Notes under the pieces: model-generated
Seen by the model: only the letters and a program-made list of their open reading frames with translations
The model's database searches: none
Told to the model about the DNA's origin: nothing
Shown: piece after piece, positions 3,412 to 28,898 of the stretch
Layout: the number at the start of each line of letters is the position of its first letter
How positions within the stretch are numbered: the first letter of the stretch is position 1
Position numbers and translations under genes: made by a program
Assembly (NCBI GenBank): GCA_047495785.1
Contig: JBLDXI010000032.1
Location: forward strand, 2,604,001-2,668,000
Direction of reading: 5' to 3'
Length of the DNA: 64,000 nt
DNA from: Lepidodermella squamata
Taxonomy: Eukaryota > Animalia > Gastrotricha

Positions 3412-4133
3412 ACTTACACGAACTCGATAGCTCTGCGCGGACGGCGCTGTTCTGGGTTCAGAGCATAATTACCTAAGCATTGAGGGCTTCTTCATTTATT
3501 TTTTTAACAGTTTTTTCTCAATCAAATTTGAGCTGCGCAGCTAAAAATATTCACATCAGGTCGTCGGAAGTGACCAATTTGCGAGCTACGCGAACAAAGC
3601 GAATAAATGGATTCGAATGACGTCATGACATGAAGTCAATCATGGCGCATCTTCCGGCGCGAATGTCCCTGAAAAACACGTTTTGACCGAAATTTTAATA
3701 TTATTTTGAACGCTGCCAATACATTTATTCGAATAACAAAACAATGAATTTATTGCGGCTACATGACAAACATGAATTTGTTTTATGATTATTGGGACAG
3801 ATGACATATCTGAACCGGACGAGCCTTCTCTCTGAAGTACTTGATTGTCCATTTCGAGTAATTCGGTCGTGACAATAAAAACTCGGACGCCTGATTTCTA
3901 GGCCATCTTACTTTTTTCTCACCGCCGCTCAGTGCAGTTGTACATTGTACCATTATTCGCAAGGCCATTTTTTGCAACGCCCAGTGACCTAATTTTCAAA
4001 AACTGTTATCAAATCGCGAGAACGACTGAGTTTTTTGTATCTTCGAAAAAAATGCGTACGGTGGTGAACAAATAAATCCCTCCTCCACGAGTCTGAAAAA
4101 TTGAAAGCGATTTTTCATCATAAATTTATTAAA

Positions 4134-5579
4134 ATGCCTCGTAAACCTATTACCGAGGAAGAAAAACAGAAACGCATCCAGCTGTGCCGCGTAAGAAAAT
4201 TCTATAACCTATGTTTCAGGTATCAATGTTGTTTATGTAAATATAGGTCTGCGATATTCCTGTAAAACGTAAGGCGAAGTACCATCCGCATACATGTTCG
4301 GCGTGCCAGAAATATTTCAGCCGAAATTATCATCTACGATCGACTTTGACTTGCAACGGCGGAAATTTGGACTGCCCAGTAACTAGTAAGGACCGAGCCA
4401 ATTGCCGTCGCTGCCGTTTGGAAAAATGTATAAAAGCTGGGCTGCGCAGTAAATTTTTCATTCATATTATTCGTTACCGCAAAATTTTCCCTTTAGGTAA
4501 GCTTGATAAGCTTGGTTCCAGTACTGGGAGCTGCGAGTCCGCTTCATCGAATTGCAGCGATTCAACAATCGGCGAGGCGATAGTTATGAGCCCAGTGTCT
4601 GATCAGCAATCAGCAAATGAAATAACAGCTGAGGTAGAGGGCCTCCTTAAAACCGCGCTTCAATCTTTCACACAATTAATTGACCTTGAATTTGTGAGTT
4701 CATCATCACATTGCCAGTTTTTTCTTTGAATTTTCGAATTTTTTGTCGCTACAGCTGCCATTGAAGGATTATCATGGACCTATCACCTCGGAAAGTCTCA
4801 AAGCGGTGATGACGGATCATTTGCGTCGAATCAACTTGGCTGGCTCAGATTTTGTCGATAATTTCACAGGCAAAAATAAAAAAATGAATGATGAGGATAA
4901 TTTAATGATCATTCATAATTTTGTTATAGATTATTTCGGCTTGAAAGAGGAAGAGGAGAAATCGATTCTTGACAGCAGTATGGTGGCCATTACTTGCCTG
5001 TTTAGCGCCCTGTCCTCGAATGATGACAAGCATCAAATCAGCCAGGATTTATTATCGTATTTTGAGAAACTTCGACCCGGTCTTCAGGTGAGCTTTTCAT
5101 TTCCATAGACATCCTGATAAAATTTGGATATAGGAAACCAATCGACTTGAAACTGCGTTAGCGGAGCTGTTCGAAGAATGGAACCCAACGTTTTTAGAAA
5201 TCTCTCTTTTGCTTCTCTTCCTTACTTTCAACAGTTAGTATTTTTCAAGTTCAATAAATTTATTAATAATTTAATCGTAACAGAAAGTGTTGTTTCTATG
5301 AACTCTAAAATGGCAAATATTCGGAAAATGTGTGAATCGGCCCTTGAGCTAGTTGACGCCAAGCAGAAAGCTGAAGATGGAACCGGCTGCTCGTCTTACC
5401 TGGGATTGGCGCTGATTATAATCGACGCAATAATGGCGTCCCTACGAGTTAATTTTCCAGGGTCCCAACGCGATGACATTGATTCAAACTCATCTAATTT
5501 AACTTTCGAACAAATTTACAACATGTTGATGTGTGATGTGCAAACATATGAATCGAACGTGTCTCTCGGTGAAGAATGA
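4134..5579 (+). CDS. Divergent nuclear hormone receptor (C4 zinc-finger DBD plus degenerate LBD-like region); exons approx. 4134-4190, 4247-4448, 4497-4693, 4755-4869, 4930-5087, 5133-5232, 5285-5579
   Basis: Spliced DBD CRVCDIPVKRKAKYHPHTCSACQKYFSR...CNGGNLDCPVTSKDRANCRRCRLEKCIKAGL; ~50-60 nt introns keep the frame. Confidence 0.8.
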
Positions 5580-24455: not shown

Positions 24456-26505
24456 ATGAGAATTTTTGTGTTTGTTTTGGCGGCGTTTCTTTTTGCGAGC
24501 TGTTTCGCGGAGGAACCCGTGAAAGCTGAGGAGAAACCGTCCGAGGTTAAAGGTAAATCATCTCCTTTATTATTATATCTCGATTTTTTAATTTAAATTT
24601 TTCAGCCGAGGAAACCAAGGAAAACAAAAAAGATGTCCCACCTGCTGTGAAATGTAAGTCAAATAATGAAGTTAACCATTTTTCCCGAATCATCTTCTTT
24701 TGTTACAAAATTTCCAGCTGACGAAGGAAAACCAAAAGAGCAGCAAGTAGAGGCTAAAGAAGAGAAAAAGGAGGTTAAGGAAGAGCCGGCTAAGGAAACC
24801 AAGACCAAAGAGCCTGCGAAGGGTAAGACCCAGCAGGATGAGGCGGGTAAAGGTAAAGTCAAACAGCAAGGCAAGCAGCAACAAGAGAAGGCCAAGGAAC
24901 AGGGAAAGCAGGGTAAGGGCAAACAGCAGCAAGGCAAAGAGCAAGTTGGGAAGCAAGAAAAAGTCAAAGCCGAAACTAAAGAGCCAGTGAAAGAACAGGG
25001 CAAACAACAGCAAGGCAAAGAACAGACCGAGGCTAAGACCCAAAAGCAAGGCAAGGTTAAGGCGGAGGAGAAGGTTCAAAAGGCTCCCAAAGAGCAAGCG
25101 AAGAAAGAAAAAATCCCAACTGAAGGTCAGGTCAAAGCAACCGAGACTGCTGAACCAGTTAAGGAGCAGGGTAAGGCTAAAGCAAAGGCCCAGAAACCTG
25201 GAAAAGCTCAGGTAGAAGAGCCGGCTAAGGAGCAAGCAAAAGAGGAACCCGTTGTCGATAAGAAGGCTAAGAAACAAGCCGAACCAGTCAAGGAAAAGAA
25301 AGTTAAGGCTGCTGCTGCTGAAGAAAAAGTAGCTGAGACAGAAACCAAGACTCAAAAGACTGGTAAGCAGGGTCAGAAGAAAACTGAGAAGCCTGTTGAA
25401 GAGGTGAAGCAAGAAAAGACGCAAGGCAAGGTAAAGAATGCCAAAGTCGAAGAAGCTGAACCAGTTAAGGAGGCTGCTCAGCAGAAGAAACAGAAGAAAG
25501 TTAAGGCACAGAAAGCCGAACCTGTTGAAGAGCCGGTTCAAGAAGAACAAGTCCAGGAACAGGAACCTGTTGCTGAGGCTGTTGAGGAAAAGCCGCAGCT
25601 GACTCCGGCTGCTAAATGTACGTCCCTAACTGGACAGCTTGCGAATAATTATCCTGTTTTGCATATGTTTCATTGTAACTTCATTTTCAGTTAACGAAAT
25701 CTTCCGCTTGCGCATGAAGCATGATGTTAAAGAATCAGTTGGTATCTTGAAGAAGCAAACCGACCTCAACAAAGCCAAGAGCTTGGTTGATAAGGCTCTT
25801 CAGACTGTTCTTGCTGTAAGTTAATCAGTTGAATGCAAAGCAAAGCCTAAAATGCGTTGTTTAAAGGATATTAAACGTTTGCAAGAAGAGCAGTTGTTGA
25901 AGCCACCAGCTAACCCGGACGCCCTGGCTGCTGGTACCATTTCGGATGCGGAAATCGATGCCTACGTGAACTTGGCCACCAATCTGCTCGTTTTTTCAAA
26001 CGCCGTTTTGTACCAACCCGACCTTTCTCGAGCCTATTTGAAGACCCAAGCCAGTGGTGAAAACGCAACAGCTGCCATCGCCACCGTTCAATGGGCTGCT
26101 TCGTTCTGCCGCGAAAACGGACTTTTCGCTAACCAGCCTAAGGCTAATGAAATCGTCAACTTGGTAAAAGATAAATTTTGAAAACAATTGGTTTTTCATC
26201 TTTTGCCGTTTTTTAAGATGGAGCAGGAGCTTGAACTGGTTCCGCGGGATCCCAACTATCAAAATCCGTATGCTCACCGTCATAAAGTTGTACGTGCTTG
26301 CTAATTAAAAGCTTGAAATGACGAAATATTGCGCTCAGCATGACTCAAGGTGACGAAATCAAACTTATTTTCTGTATTTAAACAGGACCAAGCTCGTCAA
26401 GAATTCGAAAAAAGGCAGCGCGAACTCGAAGAACAAAAGCAAAAAAGCGGCAAACTGAAAAAGCCTCTGAAGCAGAAATCGGCCAAGACTAAGGAAGAGT
26501 TGTAG
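24456..26505 (+). CDS. CCDC134: CCDC134-like ER-lumenal protein with long K/E/Q-rich insert; exons 24456-24552, 24606-24653, 24718-25617, 25691-25815, 25867-26163, 26218-26289, 26386-26505
   Basis: Signal peptide MRIFVFVLAAFLFASCFA; VQWAASFCRENGLF..IVNLMEQELELVPRDPNYQNPY resembles CCDC134 (WGISFCNQTGVF..LMAQELG..NFQNPF); ends KEEL. Confidence 0.78.
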
Positions 26506-26898
26506 CTCTTCTATTAGTTACTTTCAATTATAGCTCTGATTCATCTTCCTGCGATTAGCAAATGAATTATGCACGTTAATATAACCTCTCGCAATGATTA
26601 TTGCAGCCAACACTGTTGACTCATCTGCTTTCAAAACAACTGTGTATGTGTGTAGAATAAGTTTTAAAGCGTATTGTTAAATTGGTGATCATCGAACGTT
26701 GACAATGTGATTTTTGATTCTTTTTTGTGAACTTTTATTATTAAAGACAGCCGAAATTGAATTATTTTGTTTCTCAATTTATAGGAATAGTATTTATATT
26801 TTATCAAAATTGGTCCAAATTTATTTCGGTTGCTACTAAGACCGTCGCTGATTTTGCCTGTCCGAAGTTTCGCTTGTAATCTCATTAAAAGAGCTAAA

Positions 26899-28898
26899 AT
26901 GGCTGAAGTTGCTGCTGCTGCTGCGCCTGTTATCAACGATGCAAAACCCAAGAATGGTGAAGAGAAGAAACCGAAAGAGCCGAAAGCCCCGAAGGAGGGT
27001 GGCAAGAAAGAAGGCGGTAAAAAGGAAGGAGGGGGTGGATTCCAGTTGAAGTGCGCTAAGGGTACTCGCGACTGGTCTCCGCTGCAAATGACAATCCGCG
27101 AAAAAGTGTTCGCTACCATCACTTCCGTTTTCAAGCGCCACGGCTGTGAAACAATCGATACGCCGATTTTCGAACTTCGCGAAACCCTAACTGGTAAATA
27201 CGGCGAGGATTCGAAGCTGATTTACGATCTGGCCGATCAGGGCGGTGAAATTTTATCGCTTCGCTACGATCTCACTGTTCCGTTTGCGCGTTATCTGGCT
27301 ATGAACAAAATTCAAGGAATGAGGAGGTTCCATATCGGGAAGGTATACCGCCGCGATAATCCGTCAATCGCTCGAGGTCGCTTCCGCGAGTTTTACCAGT
27401 GCGATTTCGACATTGCCGGCACTTACGACGTGATGATGCCTGATGCCGAGATTCTTCGCTGCATGTACGAATGTTTGACGGAGCTTGGAGTAGGCTCGTT
27501 CTTGATCAAAGTCAACCACCGTCGTCTTTTGGATGGCATGTTCGAAGTTTGCGGGGTTCCGGCTGAGAAATTCCGGGCAGCCTCGTCTTCAGTCGATAAA
27601 TTGGATAAAGAGCCGTGGGAAGCCGTGAAGAAGGAACTGATCAACGAGCGTAATCTCGACCCGGCTTGTGTCGATAAAATCGGTGAATTCGTCCGATTCA
27701 GCGGCGATTCTCAGACAGTGCTGGAGCAGCTAGTCACTCAATACCCGGAACTTGAGCGCAACGCGGCCGCGAAAGAGGGTATTGACCAGCTCCGGTTACT
27801 GTTCAAATACGCCCATCTGCTCGGCGTAGAACGGGTCAACTTTGACATGTCATTAGCACGCGGTTTGGACTATTACACCGGCCCTATTTTCGAAGCCATC
27901 CTTCAAACAACGCCCACGGTTGATGGCAAGGCGGTCTTAGGCAGCGACGGCGAGCCTCTATCCGTCGGCTCGATCGCTGGTGGCGGTCGTTACGATAATT
28001 TGGTCGGTATGTTCGACGCGAAGGGCAGGAAAGTGCCATGCGTTGGCTTCTCCGTTGGCGTCGAGCGAATTTTCGCGATTCTCGAGGCGGTTTTAACGGC
28101 TTCAAAGAGGAAGGCTCGTACAACGGAAACTGAGGTGTATGTTGCCTCGGCTCAAAAGCAAATGGTCACTGAACGGCTCAAAATTGCGGCGGAACTTTGG
28201 AACGCCAACATTAAGGCAGAATATTCGTACAAGTAAGCTTTTACTTCTCGAAAACAAATTCGAAGATTTTTCGGCTGAGTAGTCAAATTACGTCGCTTTT
28301 TTATTTCAAGTCCAGACTATCTGTCAATGCTACTAGCTTTGATTACTTATTTAGGATTTCCTCTCTTGAGTATTGCCCAGTTTGTTGCTCTAAGATTATT
28401 TTTCTTGTTAATTCACTGTCTGGCTCTTAGCTGTATATGACAGCGGCACTTCAGGCGGCGTTATTATTTATAGTTATTAATAGATTTTCGATTCAGCCAT
28501 GGGATAAGTAATTCATGCAGCGCGTGGTCACTTCATCCGCTGCAGTTATCGATTGCTTCTCCTATGTAATTGTTTATACTCGTATGAACGCACGCGCTCG
28601 CTGCGTGATTGATCGTCGTCATCCGATTTGCGCTAATTTCAATCATGTTATTTTTGTCTTTTCTAAAAACAGAGAAAATCCTAAACTGCTCAACCAGCTG
28701 CAGTATTGCGAAGAGACCGGAGTTCCGTTGATGGTCGTCATCGGCGAGGGCGAAGTAACGCGGGGTGTTGTCAAGCTGCGAGACGTCGAATCGCGCGTCG
28801 AACGTGAAGTCTCTCGCGAGGCCTACATTGCTGAGCTCAAGGCTGATATCGAACGCCTCAAAACCCGTGAATCAACCACTGCTCAAAAAGAAAATTGA
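26899..28898 (+). CDS. HARS1: Histidyl-tRNA synthetase; exons 26899-28232 and 28673-28898
   Basis: [76 protein letters not shown]. Confidence 0.96.

Follow-up and report, generated by a model that had tools for sequence, protein, structure and literature searches.

A candidate AUU start codon for a mitochondrial form of histidyl-tRNA synthetase in the gastrotrich Lepidodermella squamata

Every animal needs a mitochondrial histidyl-tRNA synthetase (HisRS). Vertebrates have two adjacent genes, HARS and HARS2; outside vertebrates there is usually one gene, which yields the mitochondrial form through either a second AUG or a different first exon. In Saccharomyces cerevisiae, the HTS1 gene makes its two forms from separate transcripts. 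Among invertebrate HisRS sequences the two-AUG arrangement is seen in P0029, in P0005 as against P0006, and in P0068, with an AUG-started presequence of about 27 to 37 residues directly before the cytosolic methionine. In flatworms, an AUG at the 3' end of the spliced leader can act as the initiator. Near-cognate codons offer a further way to start a second form, and AUU is among the weaker of them. In an ALA1 reporter, initiation is possible at every near-cognate triplet other than AAG and AGG (PMC2909995). Mitochondrial starts of this kind are known from fungi, namely ALA1 (ACG) and GRS1 (UUG) in S. cerevisiae and the genes for ArgRS (AUU) and LeuRS (ACG) in Cryptococcus (PMC2909995, PMC7049704), and near-cognate starts also occur in dual-localized aminoacyl-tRNA synthetases of fungi other than Cryptococcus, whose mitochondrial ArgRS is the one that starts at AUU (PMC7049704).

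Here we describe the HisRS gene of the gastrotrich L. squamata, which lies in a window of 64,000 nucleotides, the whole stretch of DNA that was analyzed. The comparison of its upstream sequence with that of a related species suggests that mitochondrial HisRS may start at an AUU at 26809 and that ribosomes scanning past this codon would start cytosolic HisRS at the AUG at 26899. We put the probability of this reading at about one half.

The HisRS gene and its upstream neighbor

The window genome is compact, with about 43% GC, introns of 51 to 440 nt, and same-strand genes that are tightly packed. The open reading frame from the ATG at 26899 encodes a class II histidyl-tRNA synthetase with a catalytic core and a C-terminal anticodon-binding domain, and its product is 56 to 65% identical to animal HisRS proteins. 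The features of the gene and of the junction with its upstream neighbor are as follows.

26740-26745, plus strand: poly(A) signal ATTAAA, belonging to the CCDC134-like gene upstream; X1 and X3 RNA contigs stop matching at 26761 and carry loose tails of 20 to 21 A
26780-26790, plus strand: tandem unpaired splice acceptors (tatAG/gaatAG/), candidate spliced-leader acceptors; the block AATTTMTAGGAWTAGTATTT is kept in the related scaffold L001
26899-28232, plus strand: HisRS exon 1, whose first codon is the AUG of cytosolic HisRS, in a strong context (PF13393, E = 3e-43)
28673-28898, plus strand: HisRS exon 2, anticodon-binding domain (PF03129, E = 9.5e-11), supported by an RNA joint and by the open reading frame list

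The intron (28233-28672) has a GT..AG joint at 28232/28673 that was confirmed in RNA contigs of two runs, and the stop codon is 28896-28898. The L001 gene likewise has a single intron, at the same codon position, of about 70 nt (5063-5134) against 440 nt in the window. An N-terminal WHEP domain is typical of metazoan cytosolic HisRS; a domain search of the window HisRS gave no PF00458 match, and the place of the domain is taken by a low-complexity linker rich in Lys, Glu, and Gly before the catalytic core (window, 26899-27030; L001, 3770-3870; cluster P0002). The alanine run of HisRS is polymorphic in X1, with TGC inserted behind 26909. No second HisRS gene was found within the 64-kb window, and an Rfam search of the window gave no matches.

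The same-strand gene immediately upstream is weakly CCDC134-like, its PF15002 match lying under the curated cut-off, and it has its stop codon at 26504-26506. Its poly(A) tail is added after 26761, 16 nt past the ATTAAA signal, and only 23 and 29 nt separate this site from the tandem acceptors, whose AGs end at 26784 and 26790; an earlier note on this DNA had named the tandem acceptor at 26790. Of the 20 nt in the acceptor block AATTTMTAGGAWTAGTATTT, 18 are conserved in L001 (3641-3660), where the gap from poly(A) site to acceptor is similarly short (about 3600-3655), so that the operon-like junction is conserved between the two species. A spacing of 23 to 29 nt is consistent with processing in the manner of an operon, by spliced-leader trans-splicing. 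Within the window, the motif TTYTAGGAWT of the acceptor block shows no enrichment, and a literature search found no publications on gastrotrich trans-splicing. In other genes of the window, an unpaired acceptor precedes the ATG by 19 to 35 nt, against which the distance of 108 to 114 nt from acceptor to ATG in HisRS is unusually long.

Two features of the upstream region stand apart from the HisRS question. The CCDC134-like product ends in KEEL (26492-26506) in the window and in SEEL (3555-3569) in L001, a tail resembling KDEL and suggestive of a protein retained in the endoplasmic reticulum. In addition, a 342-codon low-complexity open reading frame rich in Lys, Glu, and Gln lies at 24666-25694, between the SIRT1 and CCDC134-like exons; L001 has no counterpart of it, and the L001 CCDC134 gene opens with a signal peptide 160 nt after SIRT1. 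The frame could represent an insertion specific to the lineage, or else a gene of its own.

The extension upstream of the AUG and its counterpart in a related species

The earlier note had reported that the HisRS frame extends upstream of its ATG, and this proved exact: after an in-frame TAG (26788-26790) there are 36 open codons (26791-26898). Its description of the extension was equally accurate in detail. The extension has no Asp or Glu and contains the motif RSF/A; the ATT at 26809 lies within atcaaaATTggt and the true start within gctaaaATGgct; and a TTG stands in frame at 26830. Beyond these details, there is no ATG in any of the three frames over 26762-26898. We divide the region into the following parts.

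26791-26808, plus strand: AT-rich leader, from acceptor to ATT; in frame only in the reference allele
26809-26811, plus strand: ATT, proposed near-cognate start codon; A at -3 and G at +4, with the motif TCAA[A/C]ATTGGT kept in L001
26809-26898, plus strand: candidate mitochondrial presequence of 30 codons; no acidic residue, presequence index 10.35

The 30-codon extension encodes six basic residues, four of them Arg, and has a hydrophobic moment of 0.735. Peptides were scored over their first 25 residues with a simple home-made index, the number of basic residues minus twice the number of acidic residues plus 10 times the helical hydrophobic moment. On this scale the window extension scores 10.35 and the L001 extension 10.14, compared with 4.4 to 10.9 for eight AUG-started presequences of other animal HisRS proteins and -2.2 to 6.8 for cytosolic N termini; the window extension is at or above seven of the eight controls. 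The peptides between the two starts thus appear, by the home-made index, to have the properties of mitochondrial presequences in both species. In local noncoding sequence, about 18 to 19% of 30-codon windows are stop-free, and therefore the open frame taken alone is unremarkable; it exceeds chance only through the comparison with L001. In random sequence of L001 noncoding composition, 17% of 30-codon stretches are stop-free and 6% of those reach the score, jointly about 1%. GC content is 15% over 26762-26808 and goes up to 39% from the ATT onward, and L001 shows a rise at its ATT too, from 19 to 32%; we attach little weight to this as evidence. Downstream of the ATT, RNA structure prediction gave no fold that beat shuffled sequences and none that was conserved.

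The closest relative in the collections is L001, an ENA metagenome scaffold on which HisRS exon 1 is 81% identical to that of the window and the gene order, SIRT1, CCDC134, HisRS, is the same. L082 represents the same species as L001, from another sample and an independent assembly, and its upstream sequence is identical; homopolymer assembly errors are therefore excluded. The collections searched hold only this one independent relative. A protein word search with the whole exon returned a single close relative, P0002, whose cluster has L082 as its second member; the N-terminal 133 residues of HisRS, used as a query, returned no close fragments, and a scan of JGI metagenomes for HisRS relatives returned none above 64% identity.

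Conservation of the frame in relatives, one of the checks proposed in the earlier note, was borne out in this one species: in L001 and L082, an open frame leads from an ATT to the ATG 30 codons downstream. In the window and in L001 alike, the ATT stands exactly 90 nt upstream of the ATG, embedded in the motif TCAA[A/C]ATTGGT, and has an A at -3 and a G at +4. Aligned without gaps from the ATG, the 90 nt are only 33% identical apart from the motif, about the level of unrelated sequences, yet they contain no indel. The motif matches at 10 of 11 positions at zero offset, for which shuffled sequences gave P = 0.004; allowing any offset within 30 nt either way gave P = 0.16. In L001 no stop interrupts the HisRS frame between 3665 and the ATG; this open frame encodes a basic amphipathic peptide, and the ATT is its first near-cognate codon. 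Both peptides have an Arg at residue 19 counted from the ATT, three residues before RSF/A in the window. Beyond the motif, the amino acid similarity of the window and L001 extensions is not significant (P = 0.06 to 0.10); presequences often share little sequence, and low similarity is not in itself positive evidence.

The L001 sequence also bears on which start codons are available. The only ATG upstream in the L001 leader, at 3746, is in frame and adds eight residues unlike a presequence. After the second L001 acceptor the HisRS frame reads TAT TTT TAA, with a stop at the third codon, and the other two frames are also closed before HisRS; the same is true of L082. With the acceptor frames closed and the ATG at 3746 too close to the cytosolic start, any longer extension in L001 must therefore use a non-AUG start. 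Between the ATT and the AUG, there is no out-of-frame ATG in either the window or L001. The earlier note had proposed leaky scanning past an AUU or a UUG. The AUU half of this proposal gained from the comparison, since L001 has the ATT at -30 codons with its context and an open presequence-like frame; the UUG half did not, the TTGs being unaligned and having C at -3 in both species.

We infer that the leader is present in an mRNA, that it is translated from the AUU, and that the product is imported. The leader-containing mRNA, perhaps a minor one, would probably be trans-spliced at the conserved acceptors 26784/26790, just past the upstream poly(A) site. The 30 codons from the ATT at 26809 to the AUG at 26899 would encode the mitochondrial presequence, and a minority of scanning ribosomes would initiate at the near-cognate AUU, with its A at -3 and G at +4, producing a presequence-HisRS that would be imported into mitochondria and probably cleaved near RSF/A. 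Most ribosomes would pass the AUU, reach the main AUG because no AUG intervenes in any frame, and initiate cytosolic HisRS in its strong context. This reading accounts for every sequence finding made here, and fungi offer a direct precedent.

RNA contigs, allelic variation, and alternative explanations

The RNA evidence consists of assembled contigs over one stretch of 3401 letters; such contigs drop rare forms, and holes in them prove nothing. The contigs of X1 and X3 are spliced and polyadenylated, as those of RNA runs should be; X2 is a DNA run from the same species. An exact look-up in a sequence collection, made with eight open reading frames of the window and one HisRS contig-sized piece, returned no transcripts. 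Among X1 and X3, no RNA contig lies on 26762-26876, with the proviso that contigs drop rare forms, and the depth in the two bins over this interval is fully explained by the poly(A) contig and the X1 HisRS contig. The latter covers 26877-27173 and begins exactly at 26877; its depth is full from there, and it has neither an unmatched end nor leader sequence. There is no AG just upstream of 26877. Transcription may start at this position, or the contig may begin there because of an allelic branch in the assembly graph or an artifact of filtering. The missing RNA over the extension is the main evidence against initiation at the AUU.

The main alternative, which we hold less probable than initiation at the AUU, is that the stretch is untranslated, either a promoter or an untranslated leader, and that the open presequence-like frame arose by chance. 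Transcription would then start near 26877, the ATTGG at 26810-26814 would be a reverse CCAAT box of the NF-Y type about 65 nt upstream, the block TAGGAWTAGTATTT would be a further element of the promoter or else belong to the 3' end of the upstream gene, and mitochondrial HisRS would come from another gene or an unseen exon. The ATTGG sits 60 to 70 nt upstream of 26877, more exactly 63 to 67 nt before this first RNA-covered base, and so at a distance usual for CCAAT boxes, 60 to 100 nt from a transcription start; its flanks, however, match the NF-Y consensus only partly, and the acceptor block 23 nt past the poly(A) site looks operon-style, not like a separate promoter. The frequency of stop-free 30-codon windows in noncoding DNA, the lack of significant amino acid similarity between the extensions, and the P value of 0.16 for the 10/11 motif match once offsets within 30 nt are allowed all leave room for chance. 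Against it, an open frame that also reaches a presequence-grade score in L001 would be a coincidence of about 1%, neither species has out-of-frame ATGs, the 90-nt spacing has been kept exactly, without indels, in otherwise scrambled sequence, and the architecture of presequence followed by methionine matches that of other HisRS genes.

A second possibility, and an improbable one, is that an AUG is joined at acceptor 26790 from a spliced leader or a small upstream exon, the acceptor 6 nt upstream giving GAA-TAG and hence only the cytosolic form. In the reference allele the TAG acceptor is in frame with an open stretch onwards; conservation of the acceptor block in L001 and the placement of gastrotrichs beside flatworms also speak for this possibility. 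The earlier note had offered such splicing as an alternative supply of the AUG, and the comparative and allelic data disfavor it. All three frames that follow the homologous acceptor in L001 and L082 meet stops, the HisRS frame as TAT TTT TAA, and therefore nothing spliced there can fuse to HisRS in L001.

The second allele points the same way. An X2 DNA contig carrying it differs from the window at 26764, 26773, and 26786 (A>G) and has an additional T behind 26798; these four differences fall in 26764-26798, and there is none in 26799-26835, where the contig ends. The additional T puts acceptor 26790 out of the HisRS frame, leading to stops if the allele, known up to 26835, matches the reference beyond that position, and it leaves the ATT frame intact. 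No RNA joint at the tandem acceptors and no leader-bearing contig was seen among the X1 and X3 contigs. Elsewhere in the gene, over 27867-28002 and 28729-28876, X2 contigs come in pairs, one identical to the window and the other with 4 to 11 differences, and two diverged alleles are thus present in the animal that was sequenced.

Distinctly improbable, in our estimate, is translation of the extension from another of its in-frame near-cognate codons, ATC 26803, TTG 26830, CTG 26848, or TTG 26854. Initiation is often stronger at CUG and UUG than at AUU, but none of these four codons is position-conserved in L001, all have a pyrimidine at -3, and a start at or beyond 26848 would lose most of the amphipathic segment. 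We assign only a very slight chance to the idea that the two acceptors 6 nt apart act as a switch, an AUG-ending leader giving the presequence form when joined at 26790 and an AUG-GAA-UAG mini-ORF with only cytosolic HisRS when joined at 26784. In the window species at least, the compartment of the synthetase would then depend on which trans-splice site is chosen.

Comparison with known dual-form synthetase genes

What is observed at this locus, namely the sequence features, their conservation in one relative, and the poly(A) site of the upstream gene, can be set beside each of the known arrangements. Both compartments need HisRS here as in vertebrates; the HARS/HARS2 solution differs in that the window is without a second HisRS. 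In flatworms with AUG-bearing spliced leaders, the likeness lies in an unpaired acceptor that is here in frame with an ATG-less open reading frame, and the difference is that the acceptor frame is closed in L001 and in the second allele. The layout of the window gene resembles that of S. cerevisiae HTS1 and the two-AUG invertebrate HisRS genes, in which an in-frame presequence of about 27 to 37 residues precedes the cytosolic methionine in the same exon; those genes start at an AUG, whereas the gene described here has ATT there and an extension with no ATG in any frame.

If the AUU is indeed used, the mechanism would be that of the fungal near-cognate synthetases, extended to a little-studied animal phylum with operon-like gene packing. 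It would also carry a warning for annotation, as presequences without a conventional start codon are missed and the genes behind them mis-scored as having no mitochondrial form. The proposed arrangement would share with the fungal enzymes one gene serving two compartments, an in-frame presequence between a weak non-AUG start and a strong AUG, and leaky scanning. It differs from them in being an animal gene, in encoding HisRS, and in lying operon-style behind another gene. The mechanism is thus already known in fungi; its use by an animal HisRS, conserved in two species, would be new, and to our knowledge, within a limited literature search, this would be the first animal aminoacyl-tRNA synthetase known to use a conserved AUU for its mitochondrial form.
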